A stretch of DNA of 64,000 bases from Hyaloraphidium curvatum SAG 235-1 (GCA_025558095.1 JAIVFI010000015.1:124001-188000); one strand, 5' to 3'. Positions 5,100-55,546 are shown, counted from the stretch's first letter. A program made the numbers and translations. The notes: a model not told the origin generated them from the letters alone.

Positions 5100-6602
5100 T
5101 CAACCATAGCAGTACGACTCGAGCACTACGGCGACCCCCAGCCCGCGCAGAATCCCCCACAGCGCGAATCCGACCGTCAGCAGCGTCGCCACGAGCGCGC
5201 GCAGCGTCCCGTAGGTCACCTCGAACCCCAGGAACCTCGCCGGCGCCCACCTTGCCGCGCACGCCTCCAGCTGCGCCGCGTGGTCGCGCAGCTCCGCGGC
5301 TGCCGCGGGATCCGGAAGGCCGGCGCGGGCCGCGCTGCCCGCCGATTTCGCGGCGATCCCGCGGGCGGCGGATGCGGCCTTGCGGAGGACGGCGGCGGCG
5401 GCGCCGATCCGGGCGTTGGACGCCGCGTAGACCGCGAGCACGTCGAGGACGTAGCAGAGCCACCACGCGCCCGCGCAGAGCTCCCATACCGGGACGCAGG
5501 CGCCCGCGGCCAGGTTCAGCACGATGGCGGGGAGGAGGGCGGCGGAGCTGACGGCGACGGTGCGGAAGATGCGGAGGTGGTGCCAGGCGTCCCAGGCGTG
5601 CGTGAGGTGGTCGAGGATGGCGTAGACGGGGTCCCAGTCGCGTTCGACATCGGCAGGCCCGGCGGGGGAGTGCCGGTATCCGTCCAGGACGTGCCCGATC
5701 TCGACGGCGAGGCAGCGGCAGATGAGCCGCGCCGACAGCTGCGTCATCGGCGCCCTGAAAATCTTCAGCGCGATCGCGTCCAGGAAGAAGTTGTAGACGA
5801 GGATCATCGCCAGGACGCCGGCACCGATAAGGGTTCCCCACGACGTTTTCCAGAGGACCGCGGATGAAACCATGGGCGTCCACAGCGGGGTGAAGCTCAA
5901 CCCAAACGACAGCAGGACCACCATCCGGACCACAAAGTCGCCGAGCGCCCACAATCCGGCCCGGTGGCCCAGGTTCCCCGCGCACGACGGCAGCGGGCAG
6001 GCGCAGAGCGGGTCGCCGTCCCCGTGCCGCACGAGCCGCCCCGCGGACGGCACGGCCGGTTCTTCGTCCGGGGGGGATTTCCCGCCGCCGGTACGTTCGG
6101 AAGCCGCGGCGCGGTCGACGAGCGTCCGCCACCGCCAGAGCAGGGTCAGCTGGTGCGACCGCAGGTCCCTCTTCGCGTCCCACGTCCGGAAAATGCCATG
6201 CACGGGCCAGTAGGTCGCGAGGGCGAACACGGCGTATGCCACCGATCCCACCGCGATGTTCGTTGCGCCGAAGGGCGCCGTCGTCCCCGCGAGGCCCGGG
6301 TACGCGGCGACGAGCGCCACGGCGGCCGCGTGCAGCGGGATGCCCGCCGCGAGGAGCCAGCGCGCCGGGCCCGGCCGGTCGAGCGCCAGGAAGCAAAGCG
6401 CGAAAACGCCGAGCAGCCGCGACGAGCGCGAGGCGGCGCGCTGCAGCGAGGCGGCGGTCGGCGGCTCCGCCGCGGCGAGGGACGCGTGCAGCGCCCGCCG
6501 CGCGCCGTCCGATTCGCCGCCGTCGAACGGTCTCCGCGGGGGCGGCCGGGCGACGAACGGCAGCGCCGTGCAAAGCTCCTCGTCCGTCAGCGCGCCGGGC
6601 AT
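5100..6602 (-). CDS. 7-TM membrane protein, gustatory-receptor-like (7TMIC) family, copy 1 (500 aa, intronless)
   Basis: About 7 hydrophobic segments, motif HGDGDPLCACPLPSC, C-terminus ARFLGFEVTYGTLRALVATLLTVGFALWGILRG...ESYCYG. Paralogous to 12784, 41568 and 53975. Confidence 0.75.
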   Translation of the reverse strand: MPGALTDEELCTALPFVARPPPRRPFDGGESDGARRALHASLAAAEPPTAASLQRAASRSSRLLGVFALCFLALDRPGPARWLLAAGIPLHAAAVALVAAYPGLAGTTAPFGATNIAVGSVAYAVFALATYWPVHGIFRTWDAKRDLRSHQLTLLWRWRTLVDRAAASERTGGGKSPPDEEPAVPSAGRLVRHGDGDPLCACPLPSCAGNLGHRAGLWALGDFVVRMVVLLSFGLSFTPLWTPMVSSAVLWKTSWGTLIGAGVLAMILVYNFFLDAIALKIFRAPMTQLSARLICRCLAVEIGHVLDGYRHSPAGPADVERDWDPVYAILDHLTHAWDAWHHLRIFRTVAVSSAALLPAIVLNLAAGACVPVWELCAGAWWLCYVLDVLAVYAASNARIGAAAAVLRKAASAARGIAAKSAGSAARAGLPDPAAAAELRDHAAQLEACAARWAPARFLGFEVTYGTLRALVATLLTVGFALWGILRGLGVAVVLESYCYG

Positions 6603-6864
6603 CGTGGTCTGGCAAGGGGAGCCCGTGGCGGGCGGCGTGAAACCGCGCACTAGCACAAGCCCAGCCCCTTCTGAGCCTGAGGAACCCCGCGCAGCATCCA
6701 AGGAACCACGGGGCCCGATGTCCATCGCGACGAACACCCGCCCCTGCACACCACGCTCCCCTGCAGCCCATCAAGCGACCGCAACGCGCCCCAACGACCT
6801 TGCCCGCAAACGGAAAGCCGCACAACCGCCCCATGGCGAACGCCGTCCCGCGACCGACCGGCCC

Positions 6865-8170
6865 CTACGTCCCCCCCCCCTGCTCCCCCTCCACCGCCCC
6901 CTCCTCCGCCTCCATCCCCGCGAACCAAGCGTGCCCCAGCGCCTCCTCCGCCGACGGCCTCCCCGCCGCCTCCCTCCCCATCATCCACCGAATCAGCCCC
7001 CTGGCCTCCTCCGACACCCTCCCTTCCCCTCCGGCTGCGTCGGGAAACCCGAACTGCGCGTTGTTGATCCGCGCAAACAGCGCCTGGTACCCGCCCGCGT
7101 CCTCGAACGGGTTGCGGCCAAAGAGCAGCTCGTAGGCGATGCAGCCGAGCGACCAGACGTCCACGAGGGAGGTGTAGGGTTCGCCGCGCACGATTTCGGG
7201 GGCGAGGTACTGACGTGGGGTGTCAGCGAACGGCGTGCGGGGACGGGAACGTGGGGACGTACGAGCGGGGTGCCCGTGACGGTCCTCATCAGCGTCCCCG
7301 GCCTGCCCACCGACGAGCCCTCCGAGGACGACCCGGACCCGGCGGTCGCGGGCCCGTCGTCGGCGGGGCCGACGAAGCTCCCCGCGAAGTCCACGACCAC
7401 CGCCGACCCCACGTCCTCGGGATCCCGCAGCAGCACGTTGGAAGATTTGAGGTCGCGGTGGACGATGCCGTGCCGGTGCAGGTACGCGAGGGTCTGCAGC
7501 AGGGTGCGGACCAGGCGCCGCGCGAGGGGTTCGGGGAGGCGCCCGCCGTGCCGCTCGAGGAGGTGCGTGAGGTCCCCGCCGGGGGCGTAGCTGACCACGA
7601 TGTAGCTGGCCCAACGCGCGGTCAGTTCGAACGGCGGGAAAGACGCGCCGCACCGGCGGCCACGCACAACTTGTCCGCCGTCTCGAACATCTCTTGGTAC
7701 TCGGGCAGGTGCGGGTGTCCGTTGTGCCCCCGCATCACCTCGAACCTCCTGCGGATGGTGCGCTCCATCGCCTGCCTGCTTGCCAGCGCCGCGGCGGCGG
7801 TGGCGGCGCCCATCGTCGGCGCGGGGAGCGGCAGCTTGGGCATGGCCTTGAGGCAGGCGACGGCGCCGGTCTCGCGGTTGCGCACGAGGCGCACGGTGCC
7901 TTTTTCCCGGCATCGGAGGGGTGAGATCGCGGGGTTCCGTAGGGAGGGAGGGACGCGTGCGGACCTTCGCTGCCCTTGCCGACGAGCTGCAGCTCCTTGA
8001 ACGCGCTCCGGCGGCGCTTGCCGAGGGAGTATCGCTCCAGATCCTCCGGAGAAACCAAGCCCAGCCACGAAGGGAGCGTCGCCGCGCCCCGCGGGGTTTT
8101 CGGGGAGGCGGGCGCGCCGCGGGGGGGCGGCGGCGGAGGAGGGCGCGGGCGCCGCGGGGGGTCGCGGCAT
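6865..8170 (-). CDS. Ser/Thr protein kinase (CAMK-like); introns 7900-7964, 7606-7667, 7210-7262; start uncertain
   Basis: VGKGSEG|TV Gly loop, ACLK, HRDLKSSN, DFA (DFG variant), GTPL|YLAPE, DVWSLGC, RPSAEEALGHAWF. Confidence 0.85.
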
Positions 8171-8449
8171 TGCGGGCGGCGCGGGGGCGGCACAGGGGCC
8201 GCGGCCGCGGCGGTGCGGGGCCCGGAGGGATCGCAGCGATGCGGACGGCGGCGACCGGTGGCCGTGCGGCTGCCGCGGCGACGAGTGGGGCGTGTCGTGG
8301 CGGAGGCCGCGGGGGACTGGCTGACGCGCTCCTCCGCGCGTCGAACCGCCGCCGCCCGAAAGCGACGCGTCGAACGGCGGAAGGGGTCGATCCCTCGGCG
8401 GGAAATCAGGCAGGCATTCGGTCCCGCAAGGGAGGGCGGCGGCGAAGGG

Positions 8450-9649
8450 ATGGGCGGACGCGGAGGCGATGCGGGGCCGAGCGGCGCCCCCGCCGACGGG
8501 GCGGCAGCGGACGGACCGGCGGGCCCGATCGGGGCCGAAGACGCCGCTGCCGAACGGGCACAGCTCGCCGAGGCCATGTTCCACCCGCAGCCGGGGGCCG
8601 ACGAGCGCGCGATGGACGCCGCGTTCGCCCGCGGCGGCACCGGCGCGCTCGTGGCCCTCCTCCTCGACGCGCTGGAGCTCTCCGGCCAGCGCGGGCTCGA
8701 AGGCGATGCGGCGCCGCGGCGCTGGACGGAGCAGGCGATCCTGCACGTCTTCGGGCGGGGCCGTCTCCGCCGCCGGTCGGACCTCGACCCGCGGCAGCTC
8801 GCCGCGGCGGCGCGGCTCTCGCGCTACGAATTCCGCGGGCCCTTCCTATACGCCGGGCTGCCCGCGCGGCGCTCCGTCCGGCGCGCGTGGCTGGACCTGG
8901 ACGGCCCGGGCCCGCTCAGCGTGCCCGTCCCCGCCCCGATCGGCGGCGAGCAGGCGGAGGGACCGCTCTGGTGGGCGCTGCTCTCGCTGATGGACGAGAG
9001 CTGGGACGCCGTGCTGGACGTGCAGCGGTCGCTCCCACCCCCGGTGCTCCTCGAGGCGCGCGCGCAGTACGCCTTGCTCGAGCCGGACAGGGACTTCACC
9101 GACCAGGATTTCGGCCTCGAGCCCCTCTCCGAGGCCGTCGCATCGCTCGGCCCCGCCGCGGCACCCTGGGGCCGCAGGACGCTGGACCGCCTCCTGGCCG
9201 CGGGCCAGCGGCGCTCCCCCTTCGCGACCATCTGCTTCCTCGCCGCGTCGCACGCGTTCCCCGACGGACAACAATTCCCCGAAGCATGGGACCCGCTGAT
9301 CGACCCCTCGCACGTCGGGCCGGAGCCGTACGACGCCGGGTTCCGCGCGATCGCGGCGCGGGTGCCGCTCCCCCGCCTCGAGCGGGTCTTCCTGTCGCAC
9401 GTGCGGGAGCTGGGTGCCTTCGGCGCGGCCAGGGCGGCGCCGCACGTGTGGGCGTGCCCGACGGAGGCCGTGACGGGGGGGATGCTGGCCGCCGTCGACG
9501 CGGAGGGCGCGGAGGAGGAGGCGCGGGCGGCGGTAGGTGCGCTGCGTGCGGCAAGGGGGGAGCGGGGGGTGGCTGCCGCGCTGGGTTCGTACGTTGCGCG
9601 GACATGGCACCTCCGGGAGCTCCTTGCCGACGCGGCGCAAAGCGTATGA
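8450..9649 (+). CDS. Hypothetical intronless protein (~400 aa), probably helical
   Basis: Long ORF with normal amino-acid composition and GC3-biased codons from about 8576. No family recognised. Confidence 0.6.
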   Translation: MGGRGGDAGPSGAPADGAAADGPAGPIGAEDAAAERAQLAEAMFHPQPGADERAMDAAFARGGTGALVALLLDALELSGQRGLEGDAAPRRWTEQAILHVFGRGRLRRRSDLDPRQLAAAARLSRYEFRGPFLYAGLPARRSVRRAWLDLDGPGPLSVPVPAPIGGEQAEGPLWWALLSLMDESWDAVLDVQRSLPPPVLLEARAQYALLEPDRDFTDQDFGLEPLSEAVASLGPAAAPWGRRTLDRLLAAGQRRSPFATICFLAASHAFPDGQQFPEAWDPLIDPSHVGPEPYDAGFRAIAARVPLPRLERVFLSHVRELGAFGAARAAPHVWACPTEAVTGGMLAAVDAEGAEEEARAAVGALRAARGERGVAAALGSYVARTWHLRELLADAAQSV

Positions 9650-12022: not shown

Positions 12023-12100
12023 CGGGCCGGGCGCCGGGATCATCGCTTTCTGCTGGGAACAAACATCAAACTCTTGCATTGTAGTCTAATCGCTCGGACG

Positions 12101-12132
12101 GAGGGACGGAATGGAGGAGGGACGGAATGGAG
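12101..12132. repeat. Tandem 16-bp direct repeat (GAGGGACGGAATGGAG x2) in intergenic DNA
   Basis: Two exact adjacent copies are visible. Confidence 0.8.
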
Positions 12133-12783
12133 GACCGGGCTTCGCAGGCGGCGGGCCGGGCTCCGGCGTCCTTTCCGGGGAACCGAGCGGGGGTGCCGGG
12201 CCGCGACGACGCGTCCTCCGGGATTTCTTTGTCGAGTGCGGGCAGGGAGAAGCTGCGCGGAGGAACACTCGAGGTTGCGGGGATCGGAAGCGGAAGCGCT
12301 CACGTGAGTCACTGCCTGAGTTGCCTGGGCTGTGCCCTCTCTCGTGCTCCTTATGGGTATGGGTATGCGCCAAGCCGGATTTAATTGTCGACAGTTGAAC
12401 TGGGCCGCTCGAGAAGAAGGCGGGCGGAGTCAAAGACGGCGTCGTGTTGGGCTCCAGTGCGTATACAAATCGAAGACCGCTACCGCCGCCTCGCCCGGGG
12501 CTTGCCCTCACGCAACGCCTGAAAAAGGATATCATTGCCCATGGCCCGCGCTATTTGAATTCGGCGTCGGCGGATGTTCTATAAGGTCGTGTGGGGCGGT
12601 CTGCGTAGCACTCTCAATGGGCGTCCCACATCGGGGTGGCCTCAGGCTGGACTCACTGATGGCGGGCCCAGCTACTTCGGCAAGTGTTGGATGCGATCGG
12701 CGACCTGCATGGGGAGGCTTTTGACCGAGCCAAGAGGTCGAGGTGTGACCGCCCGCCCCGCCTCGATGTCGATCCGGCCCGCA

Positions 12784-14289
12784 ATGCCCGGCGCGCTGAC
12801 GGACGAGGAGCTTTCCGCGGCGCTGCCGTTTGTCGGCCGGCCGCCCCCGCGGAGACCGTTCGACGACGGCGACGCGGACGGCGCGCGGCGGGCGCTCCAC
12901 GCGGCGCTCTCCGCCGCGGAGCCGCCCACGGAGGCCTCGCTGCTCCGTGCCGCCGAGCGCTCCTCGCGGCTCCTCGGCATCGTTGCGCGCTGCTTCCTGC
13001 CGTTCGCGCGGCCGGGCCCGGTGCGCTGGCTGCTCCCCGCCGGCATCGCGCTGAACGCGGCGACGGTGGCGCTCGTCGCCTCGTACCCCGGGCTCGCGGG
13101 CACGACGGCGCCGTTCGGCGCAAAGAACATCGCCGCGGGCTCGGCCGCCTTCGCACTGTTCGCCCTGGCGGTATCATGGCCCATGGTGGGCGTGTTCCGG
13201 ATCTGGAACGGGCCGACCGGGTACCCTGTATACGTGCGAGCGCACCAGCTCACGGTCCTGTGGCGCTGGCGACTTTTGGTCGACCATTCCGGGGCGGCCG
13301 GAGCGAGGGGAGATGGAAAGGCGTTTCCCGCGGAGGAATCAGCGTCGCACGTGGGGCCACTCGTGGCACACGAGGGGGATCCGAGCTGCGCGTGCCCACT
13401 GCCATCGTGCGCCGGGAACCTTGCACACCAGACCGGATTGTGGGTCCTCTCGGATTTTGCGATCCGAATGGCGCTTTTGGTGTTCGGAGTGAGCTTCACT
13501 CCGCTGTGGACGCCCATGGTTTCGTCCGCGGTGCTGTGGAGGACGTGGTGGGGCACCCTCATCGGTGCCGCCGTCCTGGCGACGATCCTCGCCTTTAACT
13601 TTTTCCTTGTCGCGTCCAACATGCGGATCGTCAGGGCGCCCATGACCCAGCTGTCATCTCGGCTCATCTGCCGCTGCCTCGCCACCGAAATCGGCCACCT
13701 GCTGAACGGGTACAGGCAGCCCGCGACCGGACACCCGGACGAAGACCGCGACTGGGCCCCGGTCTACGCCATCCTCGATCACCTCACGCATGCTTGGGAG
13801 GCGTGGCAGGACCTGCGCATCCTCCGCTCGTTCACGGTCGCCTCCCTCGCCCTGCTCCCCGCCGCCGTGCTCAACCTGGCCGCGGGCGCCTGCGTTCCGC
13901 TGTGGGAGCTCGGCGCAGGTGCGTGGTGGCTGGCTTACATCCTCGACAACCTGGCCATCTACGCGGCATCCAACGCCCGGATCGGCGCCGCCGCCGCCGT
14001 CCTCTGCCAGGCCGCATCCGCCGCCCGCGGGATCGCCGCGAAATTGGCGGGCAGCGCGGCCCGCTCCAGCCTTCCCGATCCCGCTGCAGCCGCCGAGCTG
14101 CGCGACCACGCGGCCCAGCTGGAGGCGTGTGCGGCCGCGTGGGCCCCGGCGAGGTTCCTGGGGTTCGAGGTGACGTACGGGACGCTGCGCGCACTCGTGG
14201 CGACGCTACTGACGGTCGGATTCGCGCTGTGGGGGATTCTGCGCGGGCTGGGGGTCGCCGTAGTGCTCGAGTCGTACTGCTATGGATGA
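12784..14289 (+). CDS. 7-TM gustatory-receptor-like family, copy 2 (501 aa, intronless)
   Basis: Close paralog of 5100-6602, with HEGDPSCACPLPSC and an identical C-terminal ~45 aa. Confidence 0.75.
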   Translation: MPGALTDEELSAALPFVGRPPPRRPFDDGDADGARRALHAALSAAEPPTEASLLRAAERSSRLLGIVARCFLPFARPGPVRWLLPAGIALNAATVALVASYPGLAGTTAPFGAKNIAAGSAAFALFALAVSWPMVGVFRIWNGPTGYPVYVRAHQLTVLWRWRLLVDHSGAAGARGDGKAFPAEESASHVGPLVAHEGDPSCACPLPSCAGNLAHQTGLWVLSDFAIRMALLVFGVSFTPLWTPMVSSAVLWRTWWGTLIGAAVLATILAFNFFLVASNMRIVRAPMTQLSSRLICRCLATEIGHLLNGYRQPATGHPDEDRDWAPVYAILDHLTHAWEAWQDLRILRSFTVASLALLPAAVLNLAAGACVPLWELGAGAWWLAYILDNLAIYAASNARIGAAAAVLCQAASAARGIAAKLAGSAARSSLPDPAAAAELRDHAAQLEACAAAWAPARFLGFEVTYGTLRALVATLLTVGFALWGILRGLGVAVVLESYCYG

Positions 14290-25306: not shown

Positions 25307-25368
25307 ATTGGGGAGGCAGAAGGTTCCTGCTGTTCGCGGCCGTGCGCGAGAGTACAATCGTGGATCCG

Positions 25369-37505: not shown

Positions 37506-39491
37506 TCAACTACGTACTACCGGCGGCACCCCCGCCGATCGCGGCCTCGCGGGCTCCCACCGCCCCGCCAACCGCTCCCTGACCAGCTCCCGCAACCCTT
37601 CCATCCCCACGACCTCCTCCTCCCCCGGCATCTCCGAAAACACCACCCGATCCGCATCCCCGATCTCGGCCCCGCGCTCCAGAAGCATCCGCACGCATCC
37701 CGCCGCGTTCTCGTCCCACCCGCCGGCGCGGATCCGGAGCAGCACGATGTTCAAAGGCGTCAGGCGCTCGTACCACCCCCCGCCCCACGGCCTCGAAAAG
37801 CGGGAACGCGGCGGATGCGCCGGCATCCGCGCCGCATCGGCCCTCTCCGGCCCGCGGAGCAGCACCCTCAGCAGCGCGCTCGGCAGCGGCGGCATCGCCG
37901 GGTCGCCCCCCGGCGGCCCCACCACCCTCGGTTCCCTCAGATCGAACCCCGCGCGCCGCACCAGTTCCGCGGGCTGCATGCCCCCCAGCAGCGCCTCGTG
38001 CACCGCGCACAGCCCGCGGGCGCTGCGCCGCGCCCACATCTCGCCCTCCCAGTCCGCGTCCCGGCCGAGCTCCGCGTCGCGGTCGTGCATCCGTTCGGCG
38101 TCCAGCAGCACGCGCGCGAGGTGGACGAGTTGGAGGCGGCAGGCGAGGTGGATGGGGAGGTCGCCGCGCGAGTCGGCGAGGTACAGGTGGGTGCGGGGCC
38201 ATTCCCGGCACAACACGCTGGCGGCGAGGGAGTAGTCCCCGAGGCCGGATGCGGGGGGCATGGGGAGCGCGTGGCGGTCCTCCTCGGGGGGTGGGAGCAA
38301 GCCTGCGGCGCCGAGGAGGGCGCAGTGCAGGGGCGTGCGGCCGAGGTGGTCGCGCATGTCGAGGAGGCGGAGCCACGAGGGGGCCGCAGGGAGTTCGGGT
38401 TCGGGGAGGGAGGAGACGGAGGCGGAGGAGACGAGGGTGGAGGAGGTGGATCGACGGCGGGAAGGGGGGCGCGGGGTGGCGGAGGGGCGCGGGGGCGGCG
38501 GGGGTTCGGGGTCGCGTGCGGGGCGCAAGGGGTCGGTTGAGGGGTCGGTGCTCGCTTCGAGGGTGACGTCGACCGTTGGTGCGTCAACCGCCGGGGTGTC
38601 GAAGCCCAGGAGTGTGCTCCAGCGTCCGCCCTCGGCGCTCCAGCGCTTGGACTCAAAGTCGCCAGATAGCCGGCGCTCGTCGTCGTCAAAGGCTCCGACC
38701 GAATTTCGCCGGCTGGCAACCGTGCCGTCCGTGTCGACCAGGCTGCCGCTCGTCCGCTTTTCCACGGGCACCAGGGGGCCCAGCGTGGCCGACGGCGCCG
38801 GGGGTTCGTCCGCCAAGGCCGACACGACGCACTCGGGCCTGTCCTCGGCGGGGTCGTCGTCCCGGGCATCGTAGCTCGACGGGTCCGCGGACCGGCCGGC
38901 GTCGGACCCCGTGCCGAGCGTGCTCGGCGGCCGGTCCGAGGAGCCCAGCGCGCGCACCGCCCGCTGCGGCCGCCTGACTGCCTTGACGTTGCGTGCGGCA
39001 TGGAAGGCGACCTCGAGGTAGCCCGCGCAGCCCTCCATGCCGCAGTCGTCCACCTCGTCCTCCCACAGCTTGCGGATCTTGCCGCGGTCTGCGAGCAGCA
39101 GCACCCTGACCGCGTCTGCGGCGCCGGCCCCGCAGGCGGCGTGCAGCAGCGACATGCGCGAGACGGGGTACGGCCAGTCCAGCGTGGCGCCCTGCCGCAG
39201 CAGGTGGCGCAGCACGTCGACGCGGTTGAGCGCGGCGGCGGCGAACGCCGTGTGGTTCTTTGCGCGCGCGACGGCGTCGCGGTCGGTGAGCGCGGCGAGC
39301 GCGGCGGCGACGGATTCGAGCGGCGACCGCGCGGAGGGCGCCGACATGGCCGCGAGCATCGACGCCGCCTTGCGCCGTCTCAGCTCGTCGCGCTGCTCGG
39401 GCGTGAGGCCCGCGAGCGCGGCGGGCGGCCCGAGCACCGGCCCGGGGCCGCGCCCCCCGGTCCCGCGCGCACGCCGCTCGCCGGTGCCCAT
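37506..39491 (-). CDS. Ankyrin-repeat protein with a Ser/Pro-rich insertion
   Basis: NHTAFAAAALNRVDVLRHLL, MSLLHAACGAG, GRTPLHCAL, GDLPIHLAC, LTPL...CVRMLLERGA. Confidence 0.75.
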   Translation of the reverse strand: MGTGERRARGTGGRGPGPVLGPPAALAGLTPEQRDELRRRKAASMLAAMSAPSARSPLESVAAALAALTDRDAVARAKNHTAFAAAALNRVDVLRHLLRQGATLDWPYPVSRMSLLHAACGAGAADAVRVLLLADRGKIRKLWEDEVDDCGMEGCAGYLEVAFHAARNVKAVRRPQRAVRALGSSDRPPSTLGTGSDAGRSADPSSYDARDDDPAEDRPECVVSALADEPPAPSATLGPLVPVEKRTSGSLVDTDGTVASRRNSVGAFDDDERRLSGDFESKRWSAEGGRWSTLLGFDTPAVDAPTVDVTLEASTDPSTDPLRPARDPEPPPPPRPSATPRPPSRRRSTSSTLVSSASVSSLPEPELPAAPSWLRLLDMRDHLGRTPLHCALLGAAGLLPPPEEDRHALPMPPASGLGDYSLAASVLCREWPRTHLYLADSRGDLPIHLACRLQLVHLARVLLDAERMHDRDAELGRDADWEGEMWARRSARGLCAVHEALLGGMQPAELVRRAGFDLREPRVVGPPGGDPAMPPLPSALLRVLLRGPERADAARMPAHPPRSRFSRPWGGGWYERLTPLNIVLLRIRAGGWDENAAGCVRMLLERGAEIGDADRVVFSEMPGEEEVVGMEGLRELVRERLAGRWEPARPRSAGVPPVVRS

Positions 39492-39868
39492 CGCGGTCCG
39501 AGATGGATCGGCCGTCGCAGCCCGGGTGGGGCCGGGGCGCCGCGATGGCGCGGGGCACGCTTTGGGATCGCTGAGCGGGGAACCAGGAACGGGCCGCCGA
39601 CAGCGCCTAGGCAAACCCTGTCGTCGTCAGACCTGGCTCCCCAGTGGCAAAGGAAGACATGGCATCCATCTTCTGCACTCCGCAGGCTCTGTGAGACGAA
39701 TGGAAGCGATATTTGCGCCCTATCCGCCGTGATTGTCCCTGCCGGGTGGCACGTCGACCTTCCCCTCCCCCGACAGCTCGGCCCGCGGCCGCCATGCACA
39801 GAACCCGCTCTATCGCAGCTCTACACATCCCAATACACTCATCTATTCGCCCGCAGCTTATCGGCCGC

Positions 39869-40855
39869 CTAGAGCCCCACGCCCTGCGAGAACGCCCCGT
39901 CGGCGACGAGGTTCGTCCCGCTGACCCACGACGCCGCGGGCGAGGCGAGGAACGCCACGCTGCGGGCGATCTCCCTGGCCGTCGCGAAACGCCCGCTGTC
40001 GGAGCGCCGTCAGTACGTGCCGGCATGCGGGGAGCGGGCGGGAGACCCACGTCGGGTTCTTGGTCTTCATGTCGTCGAACATGGGCTTCATGTTGTTCTC
40101 GACCCACTGCCAGACACCGCCGGGGAAGTACACGGCGCCGGGGCTGCAAGGAGGCGTCCGATCAGGTCCGAACGCCGGCGATGGGGGGGCGGCACACCCA
40201 CCTCACGGCGTTGAAGCGGATGCGGTCCTTCGAGTACTTGACCGCGAAACCCTTGACCAGGTGGATCAGCGCGGCCTTCATGGCGCCGTACGGATCCGGC
40301 TGGGACGCCGAGCGGCCCGAAGTAGATGCGATGGCCACGACCGAGGCGACGTCGCTCTTGAGCAGATGCGGCACGGTGGCGTCCTGTTCCGATCACATCA
40401 GTCCAGAGCAAAACCACGCCACAGCGACGCGGCACCCACGACGAGCAGCTGGAACCCCAGCACGTCCACCGTAAAGTTGGCCTTGTACGCCTCCTCCGTC
40501 GCGCCCACCGCCAGCGCCGCCGCGTTGCTCACCACGACGTCCAGACCGCCCAGCGCCTCCACGGCGCCGTCGACGAACGCCTTGACGGCGGCGGCGCCGG
40601 CGGAGAGGTCGCACTCGGCGCCATACACCTTGACCGAGGGGTCGAGGGCCTGGATCTCGGCGACGGCGGGGGCGACGTCCTTGCGCGCGCAGATGGCGAC
40701 GTGCGCGCCGCTCTGCTCCCCCGGGGTCGTCAGCACCGCACCAAAACACCGCATCGCGCCGACGGCACCTCGACGAGGATATCCGCGATCGCCCTCCCGA
40801 TCCCCTTCGTCCCGCCCGTGACGATCACCCGCAAGCCTTTCAGGCCGAGGCCCAT
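39869..40855 (-). CDS. Classical short-chain dehydrogenase/reductase, multi-exon
   Basis: VIVTGGTKGIG, LDVVVSNAA, IASTS, YGAMK, NAV|SPG, FLASPAASWVSGTNLVADG. Confidence 0.9.
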
Positions 40856-41567
40856 GCCGCGCTCGCCGACGCGTTCGGCCGCCGGAGGCTGCGCGGCGCC
40901 GACGTCGCCGAACGTCGCCGCGACGTTCTCGCGCTCTTGCGTGGCGGTGAGGGAGGGTGCCATTTCGGAGCGGGATGGAGCGCGATGCGGGGTGGGGGGC
41001 AGGGGAAACGAAACTGGACGAGGGGGACGCGGTTTTGAGAGCGCGGCTCAACTCGGCCCGCGGATGGCCGTTTCCGCGCGCCGCACGCGAGGGCGCGGAT
41101 TTCCAGGCCCGCGGATGGGAGCACGGTATGGATGGGAGCTGGATACGCGGATTCCCGGGCTTTCCCGGCGTCGCGTGCTTGTTTGCCGGACGCGATCAAG
41201 AGCGGCCCGCGACCTGGACCAAAAAGGGCAGCATCCCGAGAAGAATCCCATGCGATGGACCCGATTTCGACGTGGTGAAGCTGGATACCTTGCTGGATGG
41301 TGGGTAACCCCGCGTGTATTGCGCTCGGGTGCTCCGCCTCCAATGGTGCCGGCGGATCGATCTTGGAAGATTGGGAACGGTCGGATCCCTGATCTGATTC
41401 CGGATTCGAGTACAGGGATCGCACCACGTAGACATGTCAGCATCATCCTTCGCTCGAACGCTCACGGATCCGTCGAATCGATGTGTCTGCGTGGAGGCCT
41501 TGTTTACGTCCCAGCGGTCCGTCGAACATTCCAAACCTGATAGCGTCTCCCACTCCGTTTGCCCGCA

Positions 41568-43097
41568 ATGACGCCTTCCGAGCTCCTCGCGGTGCTGCCG
41601 AACATCCGGCCGCTGCCGGCGGAGCTGCCGCTTCTCGCCGCTGGAGCCGACGCGGACGCCGAAGCCGCTGTCGCCTTCGCCAAGGAGCACCCGCCTTCCT
41701 GGGCCGACTTGATCGCCGCAGCCGCACGCTGCGGGCCGGCATACGGGCACTTTACGCGCCTGCAGCTCGCGGTGGTCGGACCGTTCTGTCGAGTGTACCT
41801 CCTCGTCGCCATGGCTGGCGTCGCGGGGACCGTAGCCTCGGGGCTGTACTCAGTGACCGCGGGCACCACCTCCCCGTTCGGCCCGGCAAATATCGCGGCG
41901 GGCTGTGTGGCGCTGGCGCTCATTCCGCTGCACTCAATCACGGTGTGGTGGCTGGCGGCGTGGCCGCTGTCACCCGCGGAAGCGCTCGGCCTACCGCTGG
42001 TGCTGCTGTGGCGGTGGCAGACCATCGTCGGTATCGCCGGCGTGGACTCCGAGGCGCCGGATGCGGGGCCGCTCTCGATGTTTGCGCGGCACGTGGAAGG
42101 GGACGAGTACTGTCCCTGCGCGAGGCAGTCCTGCGCGGGCGACCTCGGGCGCCAGTACCTTGCGTGGACGGCCGTCGACTCGGTCCTCCGTAGCTCTCTG
42201 ATTTTCGTCTTCACCACTTTGCTGCCATACTGGGCCACTTTCGTCAGCACGGGCGCGCTCACATGGACTCGGTGGTGGGGTGTCTTACTGGGGCTCGTGA
42301 CCTTTGCGGGCGGCCTGCTGAACTTCGTGACTTTTTGGTCGCTCGCCGTCGCCATGTACAAGACGCCCGTCGTCCAGCTATCGACCCGCTTGCAGTGCCG
42401 CGCGCTATCGATCAAGATCGTCGCGCTCTTGGACTCGTACCGCGTGCTCATTCGACCTCGTACCGAAGCTGCAGTCGTCGACGGCGCCGACCAACCGGGT
42501 TCCAAACCTTTCGCGGCCGACTCGGACCCTTTCCCCGTTCTGAGGCACATAGCGCGCACCAACCTACGCATAAACAAATCCACCGACGTCCGCACCGTGA
42601 CCTCGGCCCTCCTTCTATTCATCCTCGGCGCGGTCATCAACCTCGCAGTGGGCTGCCTCCCCATGTGGGTTCTCGCTCTCGGCGTGGCCATGGTCTACAT
42701 CCTCGCGCAAATCGGAGCAAACCATGCGGCCTACAACGCCCGGATCGACGCCTTCAACACCCTGTTGCGGGCCGGCCAGTCCGCCGCCCTCGAGCTGCTC
42801 TCTTCCTCCTCCGCGGTCGACGCCGCCGAGGTCGCGGCCGGCAACGGTGCCCTCGACGCCGCCGCGGCCGCCTCCTTGCACCGCCGCCAGCTCGTCCGAT
42901 CCGCCCTGCAGCACGACGTGGAGCGCATGGCGCTGCTGTCGTCGTCGTCGCGCCACGCAACGTTCCTGGGGCTGACATTCACCTACGGCTCGCTTCGGGG
43001 GCTGGCCATCACGGCAATCACGGTTGCTTTCGCAACGCTTGGGGTGCTGAGGGGTTTCGGGGTCAGGGTGGTGGCCGAAAGCTTCTGCTACGCTTGA
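41568..43097 (+). CDS. 7-TM gustatory-receptor-like family, copy 3 (intronless)
   Basis: SPFGPANI, LLWRW, HVEGDEYCPCARQSC, QLSTRL, NLAVGC, AAYNARI, ATFLGLTFTYGSLRGLAITAITV...ESFCYA. Confidence 0.75.
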   Translation: MTPSELLAVLPNIRPLPAELPLLAAGADADAEAAVAFAKEHPPSWADLIAAAARCGPAYGHFTRLQLAVVGPFCRVYLLVAMAGVAGTVASGLYSVTAGTTSPFGPANIAAGCVALALIPLHSITVWWLAAWPLSPAEALGLPLVLLWRWQTIVGIAGVDSEAPDAGPLSMFARHVEGDEYCPCARQSCAGDLGRQYLAWTAVDSVLRSSLIFVFTTLLPYWATFVSTGALTWTRWWGVLLGLVTFAGGLLNFVTFWSLAVAMYKTPVVQLSTRLQCRALSIKIVALLDSYRVLIRPRTEAAVVDGADQPGSKPFAADSDPFPVLRHIARTNLRINKSTDVRTVTSALLLFILGAVINLAVGCLPMWVLALGVAMVYILAQIGANHAAYNARIDAFNTLLRAGQSAALELLSSSSAVDAAEVAAGNGALDAAAAASLHRRQLVRSALQHDVERMALLSSSSRHATFLGLTFTYGSLRGLAITAITVAFATLGVLRGFGVRVVAESFCYA

Positions 43098-43222
43098 ATA
43101 TGGCATTGCATATATGCTTTCTGCGTGTTCATGTCGGATCGATCGATGCATGGCCAATGTTGGTCCGACGCGCCCGTAAACACGCCTCCCAGCAACGCGC
43201 GCTTCCCGTCTCCCCGGCCGCG

Positions 43223-44655: not shown

Positions 44656-47600
44656 ATGGCCGACGTTCAGCTGCCACCGGCGTTTCTAGACTCCTACGTG
44701 CTCGGGGCGACGGATAAAGACCGCTCCGCCGCGCTTGCTGCGCACCTCGTGCCCAACTCGCCCGAGGCCCTCGCGGCCGCCGCCATTCACGCCCTCGGCG
44801 CATCGGACGTTGCTGCCGCCGAGGCGCACCTCAAAGCGCTCGACGCGCTGGCCACCGGGTTCAAGGAGCGCAATGGTTACGAGGACGCCCGCCTCCGCAA
44901 CATTGTCCTCTCCGTGAAACACCGTGTGCTCAACGCCAAGCCGAAATCCGAGGCCGCGATCAAAGAGTTGGCCGACTTCTACACCTCACAGCCGCTATCC
45001 CTGGCGCGGTTCGACCACCCGAAGCCCAGCAACCCCATGCCGACCCGCCAGACCAGCGCCGCCCCCGCGTACCCCTCGAAGCTGGACCAAACCCTGATCG
45101 ACTCTGCCTCGCTGATGCAAAAGTCGGCCACCGAATTCGACGGCCCCGAGGACCTCGAAGAGGGCACCGTGGGCGCGCTAGCCTCGTACGTCGCGCGGCT
45201 CGCGTCGGCCCCGAAAAACCCCGACACCGAGGGCAAGCTGCGCCGCCTGCTCGGGCGCACCTCGGACCCGCGGCTGTTCCAGGACCCCGCCACCGGCGCC
45301 TCGCAGCTCCCGTCCCTGCTCGCGAAGCTCTGGACCGACTACCCCGACTCGCAATTTGCCCACCTCGACCAGTTCGCCCAGTCGCTGTCGATCGCGGAGC
45401 TCGATACGCTCGCGGGCAAGGTGCCTGCTCTATGGTCCAACGCCCAGTTCGTGGGGATATACATCGGCAAGCTGCTCCCGGAAGAAGACACCGAGGAGAC
45501 CTTCGGCACCAAGCTCCCCGTGTGGACCGAGGGCATCGCGGGGGTGTGCAAGAAGATCGCGGCGGGCCCGCTGCTGGGGCTCAAGTTGCGGATCGACCTG
45601 GAGTACCTCGACCGCGTGCGGAAGGAGGCCGGCAGTAAGGAGGACTTTGCGCGGTTCCTAGAGTACCTCAAGCTGCCCAAGAGGTCGCCGGTGGTCAACC
45701 ATGTCATGTACGAAAAGTACTCGCGCTCGGCGGACTACAAGAAGCGGGGAGATGTGGAGGCCAGGGACAACTGGGGCGCTTTGGTGTGCATTCACGCGAG
45801 TTCATCGACGCCAGACAGATGCTGATCTCCCTCTTTGGTCCCAGAACTCGGACTTCTTCCCGCCCATCTACGACACCGAGGAGGAGGCGCTGATCAAGGA
45901 TTACGTCGAGGCCTACTTCATCCAGCAGATCAAGGAGGGCAAGGACATTTCCAAGGACGGCTGGAAGGTCTTTGCCGACTACATCGAGGACGGCTGGTGA
46001 GATCAGACGCTTCCCTATACTACTTTCCTCTGACAGTCCTCTTCTAGGCTCCGCAGGGTCCACGCCGAAACAGTGCTCCACCGCACCCCGTCCCCCGATG
46101 TCACCAAGCTGGCGCAGTACCTCCCCGCGCCCGTGGCCGATCTTACCGCTCGGGTCGACCTCGAGTTCCACCGGTTCAAGAACCCACAACGCAAGGAGCT
46201 CAAATCGCTCGCCTTTGTCGTCAAGAACGCGCCGACCGTTCAGGTCAACGTCTTCGGTATCAACGGCTTGCAGTTCTACCGGTCCCGCCTCGAGGCGAAC
46301 GAGCCGATCGACGACGCGGCGCTGCTGTCCCTCGACCTGGGCGGTCTGGTCCCCAACGCGAGCCGGCAGCTTGACTTTTCGGGCACCCCGGGCCTGCTGA
46401 TCCACGACGAGACCCTCGAGCTCTCGGACGACCTTTTGTTCCCCTCCTCGGCCGGCAGCCGCAAGGGCGGGCTGTGGATCGTTGAGCTCATTGGCCGCGG
46501 CAAGCGGATCCGTTGCCTCGTTCGTAGGGGCGGCACCCTCGGCTACATCCCGCGTCTTGGCCCCGCGGGGGTGCGGCTCGCCGTAGTCGACGGTGAGGGT
46601 CGTCGGGTCACGGAGTCGGGCACCCGGGTGTGGCTCGCGGGGAGGATGTACGAGCCCGACGAGGCGGGCGACTTCCTGCTGCCCTTCTCGCGTGACCCGG
46701 AGCACAAGACGCTGCTCCTCGTCTCGCAGTCTCGCGGGCTCGTGGTCCCCAGAGGCTTCTACCATCCTGCGGAGTCATACTCGCTTTCGGCGGCGTTCGT
46801 GCTCAACCGCGAGGCCGTGGCCAAGGGGAACAAGGTGTCGGTGCTGGTGCGGCCGTCGATCATGCTTAACGGCGAGCGTGAAATGGGGCTCGGTGTGGTG
46901 GACGAGAGCTCCCTGGGCGTGCGGACCGTGGACGGGCAAGGTGTCGAGACCGTCAGGACCGTGGAGGGGTTCCTGAGGTGGTCAGAGGGTGAGAGCTCCG
47001 AGAAGACTTACGACTTTGTGGTCGGGGAGAACCGTGGGTTGTCCGCCGTCGTTCGCTAGCTTTTGGATTTCCTCATCAGTATCTCGCAGTGCGCACACTC
47101 CAGCTCACCCTGACGGCCAAGGTCCGCGTCATCTCACAGAACCGACAAGAGACCCTCACCAGCTTCCGGAGCTTCTCGTTCAACGCGATCGACGCTTCTG
47201 CCGAGCTGTTCACGACCTTTGTCCGTCGCCTGCCCGCCGGGAACGTTGCGGTTTTCTGCCTGGGCAAGACCGGCGAGCCCCGCGAAGGCGAGACGGTCAC
47301 GGTGCGCCTCAAGAACAAATTCGTGAAGCGGCCTGTCGACGTCACCCTCGCCACGGACGCCAGCGGGATGGTGGACCTCGGCAAGTGCGCCGACATTGAC
47401 GTCGTGGAAGTCCTCGGCGGCTTCGGATCGAGGACTTGGAACCTCGTCCCCGCTCTCGCGGAGGATTCCGGGGACCTGACCGTGGCCGCCGGCAAGAGCG
47501 TCGCTCTCGCGCTGCCCCGCACCTGCAAGGCCTCCGAGCTCAGGTTGACCAAGGTCGTGCACCCCGGCGGGCCGGTCGTCGCCGTGCTGCAGTCGGCTAA

Positions 47601-51894: not shown

Positions 51895-51982
51895 TGCATG
51901 TAGCGCCAATGTATACATGTGCGATATCCAAAATCGATGATTCGTGGATGTCTAGCTCTATGCCCTGCTTGTCCTTCCGAAA

Positions 51983-53622
51983 TCACGATCTGGGAGTGCG
52001 TCCGCCGACGATCCTGGCCACCGCCATCATGTCCACCAGCGACCTCGCTGCCGCGGTGTGCCTGTTGAGCAGCCCGTCGTGGAAGGTCTCGGTGGCGTCC
52101 CTCCCGATCCACGCGCGGAGCGCGCGCTCGCCGCCCGGGTGGCGGGCGAGGAAGCGGGCAACGTCGGCGACGGTGCCGTCGACGACGATCCACTGCTTCG
52201 AGGGGTCCTTGGCGACGGCGTCTTCGAATTCCCTGCAGGTGATGGTCAGCGGCGATCTTTCCAAGGGGAAGCGCTGCCAGCGACATACCTCATCGTCATT
52301 GCGGGCAGGTTTTTCGGATCCGGTCCCCAGCTGATTGCCCTGCGCACCTCGGCCGCCTCGTCCTCGGCCGTGAGCACGCGCGCCTTGACGACCTCGTTGT
52401 ACGGGGTGCGCTCGAGGTCCCAAGCGAGGCCGGCGGCGCGGCAGAGGAGGATGAGCCACTTTGTCGGATCCCAGTGGAACCAGTCCACGCCGTTCCTGCC
52501 GTGCGGGGCCATGTCAGCAGCGGCGGGCATCACCGGCGGGTGAACGCACCTGTAGTCGTGCGGAAAACTGTGGTGGAAGTTGTGCCACCCCTCCCCGTTG
52601 GTCAGCACACTCAGGCCGAGGTTCCCCCTGGCCGTCACGCCAAGCGAGTACCTCCGCTCCCCCACCATGTGCGCCCACGAGTTGATGCAGAACACGGCGT
52701 GCCACAGGACGACGCGGAGCACCACACCGCCCCACAGCAGGCCCGACAGGAAGTCGCCGTACCATGCCCGCGCGGCCAGGGCGGGGCCGAGGAAGCACAG
52801 GGCCAGGGCGATGAGGGCGAAGAAGCGGTGCTGAAGGCGGACGACGGGGTCCGAGTCGAGGTCGCGGGCGTCGATGTACTTCATGCGCTGGTACTTCGGG
52901 TGCTCGAAGATCCAGCCTGGGTGGTCCATGCACGAGTCAACGAGAGCCGTCGGACAGCCATCAGGAGACGCACCGATGTGGCTGAACCAGAACCCCTTCC
53001 TCGCATCGTACGGGTCGTGCTCCGTGTCCGTGTAGTTGTGGTGCATGCGGTGCCGCAGCACCCACCACTTTATGGAGCCCTGGAAGCCGAGCGTGCCTGC
53101 TAGCGCGAGCGCGGCGCGCAGCGGGAGGGCGGCCTTGAACGCGCGGTGCGACCACAGCCGGTGGTAGCCCATGGTGATGCTGCAAAGGCGGTGAGGTGGC
53201 TTTGCGAAAGGAGGCCGGTGCGGAGCCCACCCGAACATGCCGATCTGGTATTCCAGGAACATGAGCGCCGCGGCCTCCCACCGCAGCGGGTAGGCCATCA
53301 CGATCACCAGCGCCAGCACGTGCATGCCGGCGACGAAGGCGATGTTGGCCAGCCAGGGCTCGGGCTTGGACGACGGGCTGGTCGGGGTCTTGGGCTCCGG
53401 CTCGGCCGGCGCCGCGCGCTTGTTGGGCTGCGGGCCCGGAGCGGGGAGCGGCGGGAGCTTGCCATCGTCGCCGCGGGTCTTGAGCGGGTGCAGCGGCAGC
53501 GGGGCCGGCGACGGCGCGCGCGAGCCCCGCGGGGACGGGCCGACCGAGAGCGGCTCGGGCGCGTCGCGCGCGTCGGTCGTGTGCGACGCAGGCTTGATCC
53601 CCGCGGACCGGGCGACGGGCAT
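51983..53622 (-). CDS. OLE1: Delta-9 fatty acid desaturase with C-terminal cytochrome b5, multi-exon
   Basis: His boxes HRLWSH, HRMHH, HNFHH; GEGWHN; WDPTKW; b5 HPGG, GRDATETF, NRHT. Confidence 0.93.
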
Positions 53623-53974
53623 CGCGGAGCGGTGGACGGAGGCCGAGGCGGAGTTGCGGCGCGCCCGGGCCCCCGGCAGGTGCTTGAGATTCGCAGTGGC
53701 CTGAGCGGGCCTCGGGCCAGCCGCGTATAGACCAATAAACAACGATCGACGACCGATCGTCTCCCTGCCGGACCAAGGCGCTCGTCGGCGGTCTCTATCT
53801 TTTCGTGGCTCGCAAGCCAGTGCCCCCTATTAGGGCGCCGAGAGGCCCGCCGCTCGTAGGACTGCGGAACTGAACCAGAAGCAAGGCGGCTCGTGGAGCC
53901 CCCTCCCAACCAAGCCGGCCCGAATCGCTGCCGGTTGCCGGTCACGTTTTTCCGAGAAGCTTTGCGACCCGGAT

Positions 53975-55546
53975 ATGGGGGACGTTCTGCAGCTCGACCC
54001 GCTGGAATGGGCCGTCCTCGCCCCCACCCGCGCCGCGCATTCCGCCGAGGGCCCCCTCGCGCGCCTGCTCCCCCCCGACGGCGCCGACGACTCCCCGCCC
54101 CTCCCCCTTTCGGATGCCGACGCGTGCGCCGAGCTCGCGGCCGCCGGCGAGCCCCTCTTCGCGCGCTGCATCAAGGCGTCGGCGATGCTGCACCGGCGTT
54201 TCGCACTGCAGGCCCGCGTGCTCACGTGGGGGCCGGCGCTGGCCGCCGTGCCGGTGCTTGTCGCGCTCGCCGTATTTGCTGCCAGGGAATCTGTACCGGG
54301 CGCCCCGACATTCGGTCCCGCGCAGGTCGGAGCGGGGCTGGCCGCGGTGGCGCTCTTTTTCCTCTCCAACATCGTCGGGTTCACCCTTGCGCTGCGCCAG
54401 CGCCTCTTCAGGGAATGGGGCATCACTTTCCGCGTCCTCACGCCGTTTGCCCCCGCCGTGAGGTGGCTCAAGCTCGCGCGGGCGTCGTCAAGCCTGGGGC
54501 AAACCGGGGAACCGACCGGCGACGCCGCGCTCGAGGCCCGTGAAGACAGCAAAACGGCCGTTGCGGGCCCCGTGCTGCTCCAGCACGATTCCGATGACCC
54601 CATGTGCTCGTGCCCCAGACCCTCGTGCGCTCGCGGCGTGATTTCCGCGGACTTCCGGTGGCGCGTGGCCGACCTCGTCGGCTTCGTCGCCTCGCGCTGG
54701 GCCATCCACATACTCCTCCTCTGGACCCCGCTGGTCACCCTTGCCCCTGTCTTTTGGGGCACCGCCTGGAGCGCGGCCTTTGGAGGCGTCGCGTGCGCGT
54801 TTGCGCTGCTGTCGGACCCCGTCCTAGGTCTCGGAAGGAGCTTCGGGCCCATCATCACTGCCAGCTCGGCGAGCTTCGCAAGCAGGATGCAGCAGCGCGC
54901 CGTGTCGAGGGCGCTAGCTTCGCTTCTCGACCGATACCGCGCCGCTCTGGCCTCTGGCGGCGGGCAGGAACCGCCTTCGGATCCCGAGGGCGGCGACGTC
55001 GGCCGGGAACTCTACGTCCGCCTGCACCTCCGCCTCTCGGTCGGCTGGTCCGGGCGGTTCACCCACCTCGGCACCTTCTCCCGGCTCCTGGCCGCGCGCA
55101 TCGCCGCCCTCGTCCTGGGGCTGATCCTCAACATCGCGGCGGGCTCGTGCGTCGCGGCGTGGCAGCTCGCCTTCCTCCTCTTCGTGCTGCTGTTCTTCTT
55201 CGCCGAGATGGCCTACGTCGCCGAGGCAAACAGGCAGCTGGACGGGGTGGTCGCGCTGTACCGCGCCGCGCAGCTGTCGATCCGGGACCTGGCGGCGCTG
55301 GCCGGGCGCCGCCCTGCCGCCCAACCAACGAAAGACATGCTGGAGCAGCTGTCGCGGCACGACGCTCTGCTTTCCTCCTTCGTCGAGGTGCGCAGCCTCA
55401 GGGCGCGCGTGGCGGGGTTCCCGGTGTCGTACCCTCTATTGCGCACCTTGGCGGCGACGCTGTTCACGGTTGGGGTGGGGATATGGAGCGTGCTGCGGGG
55501 CGCGGGGGTGGCGCTGACGGTGCAGACGGTGTGTCCCGCGTATTAG
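53975..55546 (+). CDS. 7-TM gustatory-receptor-like family, copy 4 (intronless)
   Basis: PTFGPAQV, VRWLK, HDSDDPMCSCPRPSC, LLWTPLVT, NIAAGSCV, AEANRQL, ARVAGFPVSYPLLRTLAATLFTV...QTVCPAY. Confidence 0.75.
   Translation: MGDVLQLDPLEWAVLAPTRAAHSAEGPLARLLPPDGADDSPPLPLSDADACAELAAAGEPLFARCIKASAMLHRRFALQARVLTWGPALAAVPVLVALAVFAARESVPGAPTFGPAQVGAGLAAVALFFLSNIVGFTLALRQRLFREWGITFRVLTPFAPAVRWLKLARASSSLGQTGEPTGDAALEAREDSKTAVAGPVLLQHDSDDPMCSCPRPSCARGVISADFRWRVADLVGFVASRWAIHILLLWTPLVTLAPVFWGTAWSAAFGGVACAFALLSDPVLGLGRSFGPIITASSASFASRMQQRAVSRALASLLDRYRAALASGGGQEPPSDPEGGDVGRELYVRLHLRLSVGWSGRFTHLGTFSRLLAARIAALVLGLILNIAAGSCVAAWQLAFLLFVLLFFFAEMAYVAEANRQLDGVVALYRAAQLSIRDLAALAGRRPAAQPTKDMLEQLSRHDALLSSFVEVRSLRARVAGFPVSYPLLRTLAATLFTVGVGIWSVLRGAGVALTVQTVCPAY

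Follow-up and report, generated by a model that had tools for sequence, protein, structure and literature searches.

A family of several hundred intronless genes in the fungus Hyaloraphidium curvatum encodes seven-helix membrane proteins with a predicted fold like that of insect odorant and gustatory receptors

What kind of membrane protein is encoded by four intronless genes that lie close together in the genome of Hyaloraphidium curvatum, and how far does their family extend? The genes are in a 64-kb stretch of contig 15 of the 55-contig, 31.9-Mb assembly of this fungus (the "window", by which we mean the whole stretch; its GC content is 67%). A reading of the window made without database searches, which we call the sequence-only reading, had likened the four proteins to the gustatory receptors (GRs) of insects and to their odorant receptors (ORs). 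It had proposed that they belong to a large lineage-specific repertoire of putative ligand-gated channels within the superfamily of seven-transmembrane ion channels (7TMICs). We report the size of the family, the computed topology and predicted fold of its members, and the explanations that might account for its expansion.

Four window genes and a family of several hundred

Uninterrupted open reading frames (ORFs) for four paralogs of ~500 aa are present exactly where the sequence-only reading had placed them, and the proteins can be aligned end to end. The genes, with the evidence for each, are:

5100-6602, minus strand: copy 1, a 500-aa family member, single exon (ORF translation; family hidden Markov model (HMM), E 5e-170)
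12784-14289, plus strand: copy 2, a 501-aa family member, single exon, a young inverted duplicate of copy 1 (ORF; family HMM)
41568-43097, plus strand: copy 3, a 509-aa family member, single exon, transcribed (ORF; family HMM; RNA contigs; AlphaFold2 model)
53975-55546, plus strand: copy 4, a 523-aa member of a distant subclade of the family, single exon (ORF; family HMM; AlphaFold2 model)

In a six-frame scan of the window with the family HMM, the four copies scored from E 1e-135 to 5e-170 and there was no fifth family member. Pairwise identity among the copies ranges from 24% to 76%: copies 2, 3, and 4 are 76%, 38%, and 30% identical to copy 1, and copies 3 and 4 are 24% identical to each other.

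These ORFs are genes, not chance ORFs of GC-rich DNA, because GC content at third codon positions (GC3) is 83-92%, the ratio of nonsynonymous to synonymous substitution rates (dN/dS) between copies 1 and 2 is 0.37, copies 4 and 2 have entries in NCBI, and RNA contigs lie on copy 3. The copies are under purifying selection. Copy 4 is letter-identical to a deposited NCBI protein (P0011). The NCBI entry for copy 2 starts 70 codons earlier, at an upstream ATG at 12574, which gives a protein of 571 aa (12574-14289, plus strand). However, the DNA similarity between copies 1 and 2 is bounded exactly by the ATG (at 12784 in copy 2) and the stop codon; because of this boundary and the alignment of the family, we place the start of copy 2 at 12784. 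A collection of 15 billion proteins had no exact entry for the simple ORF of copy 1 or of copy 3, and these genes may be unannotated or modelled differently in the deposited data.

Three counts converge on about 400-450 genes for the family in H. curvatum. Scoring of the genome gave at least 84 matches, from 754 first-look candidates; these have no internal stops and the weakest has E 3e-38. A HMMER profile built from 25 members and compared with 1.84 billion cluster representatives (clustered at 50% identity) had 446 matches at E ≤ 1e-3, 401 at E ≤ 1e-10, and 282 at E ≤ 1e-30. Finally, we counted a 29-place codon pattern for the motif C-x-C-x4-C-A-G across the genome, with the reversed pattern as a control. 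There were 257 genomic matches versus 42 for the control and, as the exact motif is present in just 48 of 96 aligned members, this corresponds to roughly 430 genes.

As far as could be seen, the family is specific to this lineage. When we sampled across the best 150 of the 446 library matches, all ten were "hypothetical protein DFJ74DRAFT_..." of H. curvatum, each in a singleton cluster, and no member from outside this species was found in that sample. Also, for 13 of the listed library matches, the window or another locus of the H. curvatum genome encodes exactly the same protein. A metagenome scan with the family alignment gave 472 pattern matches and 0 relatives, at low sensitivity. A word-index search for proteins (with copy 3 or with a 96-sequence profile) returned only the query, and it is uninformative about relatives because alanine-rich words swamp the candidates. 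The large lineage-specific repertoire that had been predicted from four copies is thus supported by the counts and, for the restriction to this lineage, by the matches sampled.

A FastTree tree of 96 members joins copies 1 and 2 as sisters and puts copy 3 in their wider clade, with copy 4 far away. It has the shape of a star, its terminal branches measure ~1 substitution per site, and the median pairwise identity is 27%. Family members are often paired or tripled within a few kb, in both orientations. The family appears to be an old radiation with occasional local duplication.

Topology, conserved motifs and predicted fold

Hydropathy averaged over the family gives seven transmembrane (TM) segments, and both AlphaFold2 models have helices at the same places. 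We assigned the topology by the positive-inside rule, by counting Lys and Arg within 15 residues of the helix ends in 25 members. With the N-terminus inside (N-in), there are 13.1 such residues on the cytoplasmic side and 2.8 outside. In the same members, the external segments are 8.1, 7.8, 4.9, and 13.0 aa and the internal segments are 70.5, 82.8, 78.0, and 69.2 aa. The computed topology is N-in with seven TM segments, which is the inverse of that of G-protein-coupled receptors (GPCRs). This is the arrangement that the sequence-only reading had expected, and the N-out arrangement that it had named as contrary evidence was not found.

Other features that had been described from the four copies extend to the family. 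The TM4-TM5 loop has a mean length of 78 aa and the TM5-TM6 loop is 4-5 aa. The motif A-x-x-N after TM6 is present, and its Asn does not vary among 96 members; the terminal segment reads A-R-F-L-G-F-x-V-T-Y-G-x-x-R...T-x-x-T-V. In copy 3, the first of these motifs is at:

42726-42746, plus strand: cytoplasmic end of TM6, A-x-x-N-A-R-I with the invariant Asn (alignment of 96 members)

Two further modules were not part of that description. The TM2-TM3 loop, which is the first intracellular loop (IL1, ~83 aa), contains the motif H-x6-C-x-C-x4-C, and its His and three Cys are invariant in the 25 members and in the 96 members. In the model of copy 3, this block has a predicted local distance difference test score (pLDDT) of 91-94 and no regular secondary structure. 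The motif is probably a structural zinc site:

5982-6026, minus strand: H-x6-C-x-C-x4-C of copy 1, candidate zinc site
13369-13410, plus strand: the same motif in copy 2
42090-42134, plus strand: the same motif in copy 3
54584-54628, plus strand: the same motif in copy 4

The second module is a pair of cysteines. One is in the turn between TM5 and TM6 (C392 in the numbering of copy 4) and is invariant; its C-terminal partner (C520) is 98% conserved and lies 2-4 residues from the C-terminus, and 91 of 96 members have a Cys among their last 8 residues. From their conservation and their predicted external side, these residues are a candidate disulfide:

42651-42668, plus strand: TM5-TM6 external turn of copy 3, with the invariant Cys
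43086-43088, plus strand: C-terminal Cys of copy 3
55142-55162, plus strand: TM5-TM6 external turn of copy 4, with the invariant Cys
55532-55534, plus strand: C-terminal Cys of copy 4

The Cys pair is predicted to be outside and the His-Cys3 cluster inside, so each is placed as expected for a disulfide and for a zinc site, respectively. We also noticed a conserved motif in the cytoplasmic N-terminus, approximately L-T-P-x-E-(L/W)-L-A-x-(L/F)-P (for example, at 41568-41610), in which the Glu is 82% and the Pro 98% conserved. This motif might act as a signal for trafficking or for assembly.

We modelled two of the window proteins with AlphaFold2. Model 1 (copy 3, from an alignment of 25 sequences) has pLDDT 84 and a predicted template-modelling score (pTM) of 0.87; model 2 (copy 4, from an alignment of 96 sequences) has pLDDT 87.4 and pTM 0.88. 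We compared each model exhaustively with 48,161 chains. For model 1, insect ORs, Orco, and GRs took ranks 1-8, with 293-341 residues aligned over residues 37-509 of the model. For model 2, they took ranks 1-6 (305-346 residues), and all eight 7TMIC representatives were in the top 13. No GPCR, rhodopsin, or transporter was in the top 50 of either search. In Foldseek, the top matches of both models were GRs (probability 0.99; E 0.085 for model 1 and 0.025 for model 2). In the search with model 1, GPCR chains had probabilities of only 0.04-0.09 and template-modelling scores (TM-scores) of ~0.1. The match to a GPCR, to a transporter, or to nothing in the 7TMICs that would have spoken against the proposed fold was therefore not what we saw.

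Both models also have the hallmarks of the 7TMIC fold as used by Benton and Himmel (PMC9998090): TM4-TM6 extend far into the cytoplasm, and TM7 is divided by a break into a cytosolic TM7a and a membrane-spanning TM7b. TM6 is a single helix of 59 residues in copy 3 and 51 residues in copy 4, and the cytoplasmic extensions of TM4-TM6 are long in both models. TM7a (431-460 in copy 3, 451-470 in copy 4) is followed by a break with short strands and then by TM7b (473-496 and 486-509). Helix packing was judged from the structural alignments alone. Searches of the ESM Atlas gave leads only: the matches by shape (TM-scores of 0.48-0.54) were to clusters without a name, from eukaryotes (green algae, echinoderms, and arthropods), and the matches by feature scored at most 0.87, with DUF3537 at rank 24 (0.80).

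Several results weigh against this assignment. The Foldseek TM-scores to solved receptors are just 0.23-0.45, and both models were built from alignments that contain only paralogs. Among 96 members, we found no match to the Pfam families 7tm_6, 7tm_7, DUF3537, or PHTF at E ≤ 10, only scattered chance hits; the four copies compared with Pfam at E ≤ 1 likewise gave only scattered chance hits, and the family profile had 0 matches among PDB sequences at E ≤ 10. In GRs, the motif TYhhhhhQF occupies the extracellular half of S7b, with its Phe at the external gate, and S7b of GRs and ORs has rings of hydroxyls in the pore (PMC11100771). The conserved T-Y of the H. curvatum proteins had been likened to this signature, but it sits at the cytoplasmic start of TM7b, so that comparison fails. 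The external half of TM7b does not contain TYhhhhhQF; it reads hydrophobic-x-L-R-G-x-G-V and has no Q-F. Unlike the cation-selective channels of insects, the family also has a conserved Arg where TM7b ends on the outside. Of the proposed resemblance to GRs and ORs, the predicted fold, the computed topology, and the modelled split of TM7 into TM7a and TM7b are supported, and the GR motif of TM7 is not.

The missing link by sequence does not exclude membership in the 7TMICs, because the published 7TMIC families likewise lack similarity to each other (bioRxiv 10.1101/2023.08.30.555482). We place the family among the 7TMICs at the level of predicted fold and topology, from which we infer homology, and we consider it highly likely that the family has this fold. 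Alternatively, the likeness to ORs and GRs might be convergent, or might reflect generic packing of helices, and the proteins could be an unrelated, lineage-specific multi-pass membrane protein, such as a transporter or a metal-dependent membrane enzyme with the His-Cys3 motif at its centre. The invariant His, Cys, and Asn residues could be catalytic or could bind metal, the family has no sequence-level link to any 7TMIC, and its TM-scores are below 0.5. But the His-Cys3 motif is in a cytoplasmic loop, outside the membrane core. Moreover, all eight 7TMIC representatives, and no other seven-TM or transporter family, came to the top of two independent exhaustive searches, with over 290 residues aligned and seven helices in order. 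N-in topology, the asymmetry of the loops, the long extensions of TM4-TM6, and the split TM7 also occur together. We think that convergence or generic packing is quite improbable.

Possible mechanism and comparison with known systems

TM7b is the most conserved helix of the family, with a column entropy of 1.68 bits versus ~3.0 for TM1-TM6. The Arg, T-x-x-T, and L-R-G-x-G of this helix are at least 80-99% conserved. One Thr, ~10 residues before the external end, is 99% conserved, and the Thr three residues before it is 81% conserved. By analogy, the near-invariant Thr in the middle of TM7b could match the pore hydroxyl rings of GRs and ORs, or the first Thr of the GR motif. By the helix limits of the AlphaFold2 models, the candidate pore helix is at:

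5142-5216, minus strand: T-Y plus TM7b of copy 1
14173-14247, plus strand: T-Y plus TM7b of copy 2
42981-43055, plus strand: T-Y plus TM7b of copy 3
55427-55501, plus strand: T-Y plus TM7b of copy 4

The insect ORs and GRs, such as Orco, MhOr5, AaegOR10, AgamOR28, BmGr9, and DmGr43a/Gr64a, are tetrameric ligand-gated cation channels. Conservation in the H. curvatum family is distributed as it is in the OR and GR families, and we propose a common pore and assembly module that is joined to diversified sensing bundles. If the analogy to the solved receptors holds, then the subunits would form a tetramer via a cytoplasmic helical "anchor" bundle, made of the extensions of TM4, TM5, and TM6 together with TM7a; the conserved TM7b would line a central ion pore; and the variable bundle of TM1-TM6 would form diversified sensing pockets that gate the pore. 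To this plan the family would add two elements: in the cytoplasm, a His-Cys3 knuckle of IL1 that is probably a structural zinc site, and outside, a Cys pair that ties the C-terminal tail to the TM5-TM6 turn. The conservation of TM7b supports a tetrameric pore lined by TM7b only indirectly.

Overall, we favor the explanation that these proteins are N-in, seven-TM channel subunits of the 7TMIC fold with diversified sensing bundles on a common module, and we regard it as probable. The claims about fold, ion channel, and chemosensing are nested, each within the previous one. From the analogy to insect receptors, we lean modestly towards an ion channel, and a chemosensory ligand-gated channel is a tentative suggestion. 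H. curvatum is an atypical non-flagellated fungus (PMC8371127); it is a non-motile planktonic monoblepharid with no known zoospores. Its lifestyle also speaks against our interpretation: a classical chemotactic role is doubtful, and a role in the chemotaxis of zoospores is unlikely because the host lacks known zoospores or a flagellum (PMC8371127). That H. curvatum independently built ~400-450 ligand-gated channels of the 7TMIC type, as a chemical sense for a single cell or for recognition or defence, with a new regulatory module in the form of a cytoplasmic zinc knuckle that other 7TMICs are not known to have, is a speculative and somewhat doubtful proposal.

The proteins might instead have the 7TMIC fold and not be sensory channels of the plasma membrane. 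They could be scaffolds, intracellular channels, or proteins for self/non-self recognition or defence, in which case their expansion would reflect an arms race. IL1 is enlarged (~83 aa), as in PHTF-type proteins of class B (bioRxiv 10.1101/2023.08.30.555482), and nearly all of the mass outside the membrane is cytoplasmic, with external loops of just 5-13 aa. However, the ligand pockets of ORs and GRs are within the TM bundle, so small external loops are no argument against sensing, and there is no Pfam signal for PHTF at E 10. The star-like and very divergent tree resembles those of fungal recognition families, and the host is non-motile. RNA word depth over copy 3 is below that of its neighbours (10-34 versus 57-894 in run X1), although the depth of contigs says little about expression. 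Against all this, the most conserved element of the family is exactly the helix that lines the pores of ORs and GRs. We consider a non-channel or intracellular role unlikely but worth keeping in mind, and we continue to favor channel subunits.

The comparison with insect ORs and GRs has two sides. The shared features are seven TM segments, N-in topology, short external and long internal loops, long cytoplasmic extensions of TM4-6, the split into TM7a and TM7b, a TM7b that is the most conserved part next to a variable TM1-6, and a very large, divergent repertoire. In contrast, there is no detectable similarity of sequence, the external half of the family's TM7b lacks TYhhhhhQF, and the family has an IL1 of ~83 aa with the invariant His-Cys3 and an invariant external Cys pair, unlike the insect receptors. 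The hosts differ as well, as H. curvatum is a unicellular fungus that has neither neurons nor a flagellum.

PHTF proteins, which belong to the class-B 7TMICs, reside in the endoplasmic reticulum. They share the core fold, with similar Z scores to insect receptors (11.8-12.9; PMC9998090), and an enlarged first intracellular loop (bioRxiv 10.1101/2023.08.30.555482). Unlike the H. curvatum family, they are single- or low-copy and highly conserved across eukaryotes, and their IL1 and N-terminus are much longer; the H. curvatum family is hyper-expanded and fast-evolving, and has no PHTF signal in Pfam. The DUF3537 proteins of plants and algae share the 7TMIC-type topology and an unrecognisable TM7 motif, and were a weak lead from the language model (rank 24, 0.80). 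But they form small families, with 4-12 genes per plant genome, and the H. curvatum family has no match to PF12056 at E 10.

Closer in taxonomy are the gustatory-receptor-like proteins (GRLs) of chytrids, SpunGRL1 and SpalGRL1 of Spizellomyces (PMC7746228), with which we compared the family by description only. These are also from fungi, of an early-diverging zoosporic lineage, and have the GRL-type topology. Their TM7 motif is largely degenerate too, with one of four positions kept (PMC7746228). Unlike the H. curvatum family, which has ~400-450 genes and no similarity of sequence to animal GRLs, the chytrid GRLs are encoded by a single gene per genome and were found by such similarity.

Outside animals and plants, 7TMICs were described as scattered copies, single or few per genome: 17 proteins in 7 unicellular species in 2020 (PMC7746228). 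The superfamily already includes the single-copy chytrid GRLs (PMC7746228) and class-A and class-B families of eukaryotes (bioRxiv 10.1101/2023.08.30.555482). What is new here is a sequence-orphan branch that has grown to several hundred genes in a single fungus and carries conserved modules that are also new (the His-Cys3 motif and the Cys pair). The papers that we searched contained no link between Hyaloraphidium and 7TMICs, gustatory or odorant receptors, or DUF3537. If our interpretation is correct, then this is the largest 7TMIC repertoire outside animals, comparable to or above the combined OR and GR repertoires of insects and ~100-fold beyond any other described non-animal, and it would show that this fold can undergo massive "receptor-style" radiations independently of nervous systems. 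7TMICs are familiar as insect channels for smell and taste. A culturable unicellular fungus would be a simple system for asking what non-animal 7TMICs sense and conduct, and its proteins offer direct handles for mutation in the invariant His-Cys3 loop and in the pair of external Cys.

Gene structure, spread and neighbourhood

The claim that the copies are intronless within an intron-dense setting agrees with the gene structures and with RNA. All 84 scored copies are uninterrupted frames, and 25 of 30 loci have a full-length single ORF that begins at a Met aligned with the N-terminus of the family. RNA run X1 contains spliced RNA, because contigs from neighbouring genes (at 40143-40769 and 45782-45844) have canonical GT..AG joints of 56-61 nt. 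X1 contigs give neither expression levels nor transcript ends. Three contigs lie over copy 3 (41563-41883, 41919-42824, and 42976-43135) and none has a joint, while the spacer upstream (41015-41562) is essentially without RNA contigs. Since the neighbours do show joints, copy 3 is transcribed as an unspliced, collinear message amid intron-dense genes. It is plausible that the family spread from one intronless founder, as had been suggested. Animal genes of this kind have conserved 3' introns, whereas the H. curvatum genes are intronless. The family thus lacks the intron pattern that is used as a gene-structure criterion for animal GRs and GRLs, and this criterion is uninformative outside animals (Benton et al. 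2020, PMC7746228).

An intron-rich genome that holds hundreds of scattered intronless copies also brings selfish multiplication to mind: the copies might be retrocopies, genes derived from a virus, or genes carried by a mobile element. The similarity between copies 1 and 2 is limited exactly to the coding sequence, which would fit this, and at three loci direct repeats lie to either side of the ORF. However, the flanks of 25 loci have no sequence similarity to each other, so there are no common termini, and we rejected the mobile-element hypothesis for this reason. Codon usage is host-like (GC3 of 83-92%), dN/dS is below 1, and the median identity of 27% together with terminal branches of ~1 substitution per site indicates an old radiation rather than a recent burst. 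In addition, ten large neighbouring ORFs that we scanned had no Pfam domain of a transposase, reverse transcriptase, or virus. Selfish multiplication is very unlikely. The loci with direct repeats that bracket the ORF are:

L030 (G000, C37:8700-12875): repeats of 353 bp, 93%
L013 (C30:542667-547166): repeats of 259 bp, 81%
L015 (C42:58171-62727): repeats of ~380 bp, 71%

These repeats are not shared with other loci and might be from local tandem duplication.

Copies 1 and 2 are in divergent orientation and 6.2 kb apart. Their nucleotide identity is a mosaic: it is 94% over the first 150 nt, drops to 62-83% in the middle, and is 93-99% over the last 400 nt. Synonymous differences mirror this mosaic, with very few in the high-identity ends. 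This pattern fits gene conversion that is confined to the homologous coding sequences of the two divergently oriented copies. Other examples of clustered members, from the list of genome matches and in both orientations, are (all in G000):

C12:253145-256702
C9:734008-739157
C39:391484-400344
C41:358393-368208
C6:171391-174531

The copy L008 on C12 is broken, and its continuation in a second reading frame points to a frameshift.

Of the large ORFs near the copies, only two have a Pfam match, and they encode an ankyrin-repeat protein and a protein similar to FAD-binding monooxygenases (37506-39614, minus strand, and 58634-60139, plus strand). Eight further neighbouring ORFs of 450-870 aa have no Pfam match, and some of these may be chance ORFs of GC-rich DNA. 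Near copy 3, the gene at 40143-40769 (minus strand) has three introns of 56-61 nt within ~630 nt, and the intron at 45782-45844 is in a plus-strand gene. The highest word depth in X1 (~890) is in the gene from ~44562 onward.

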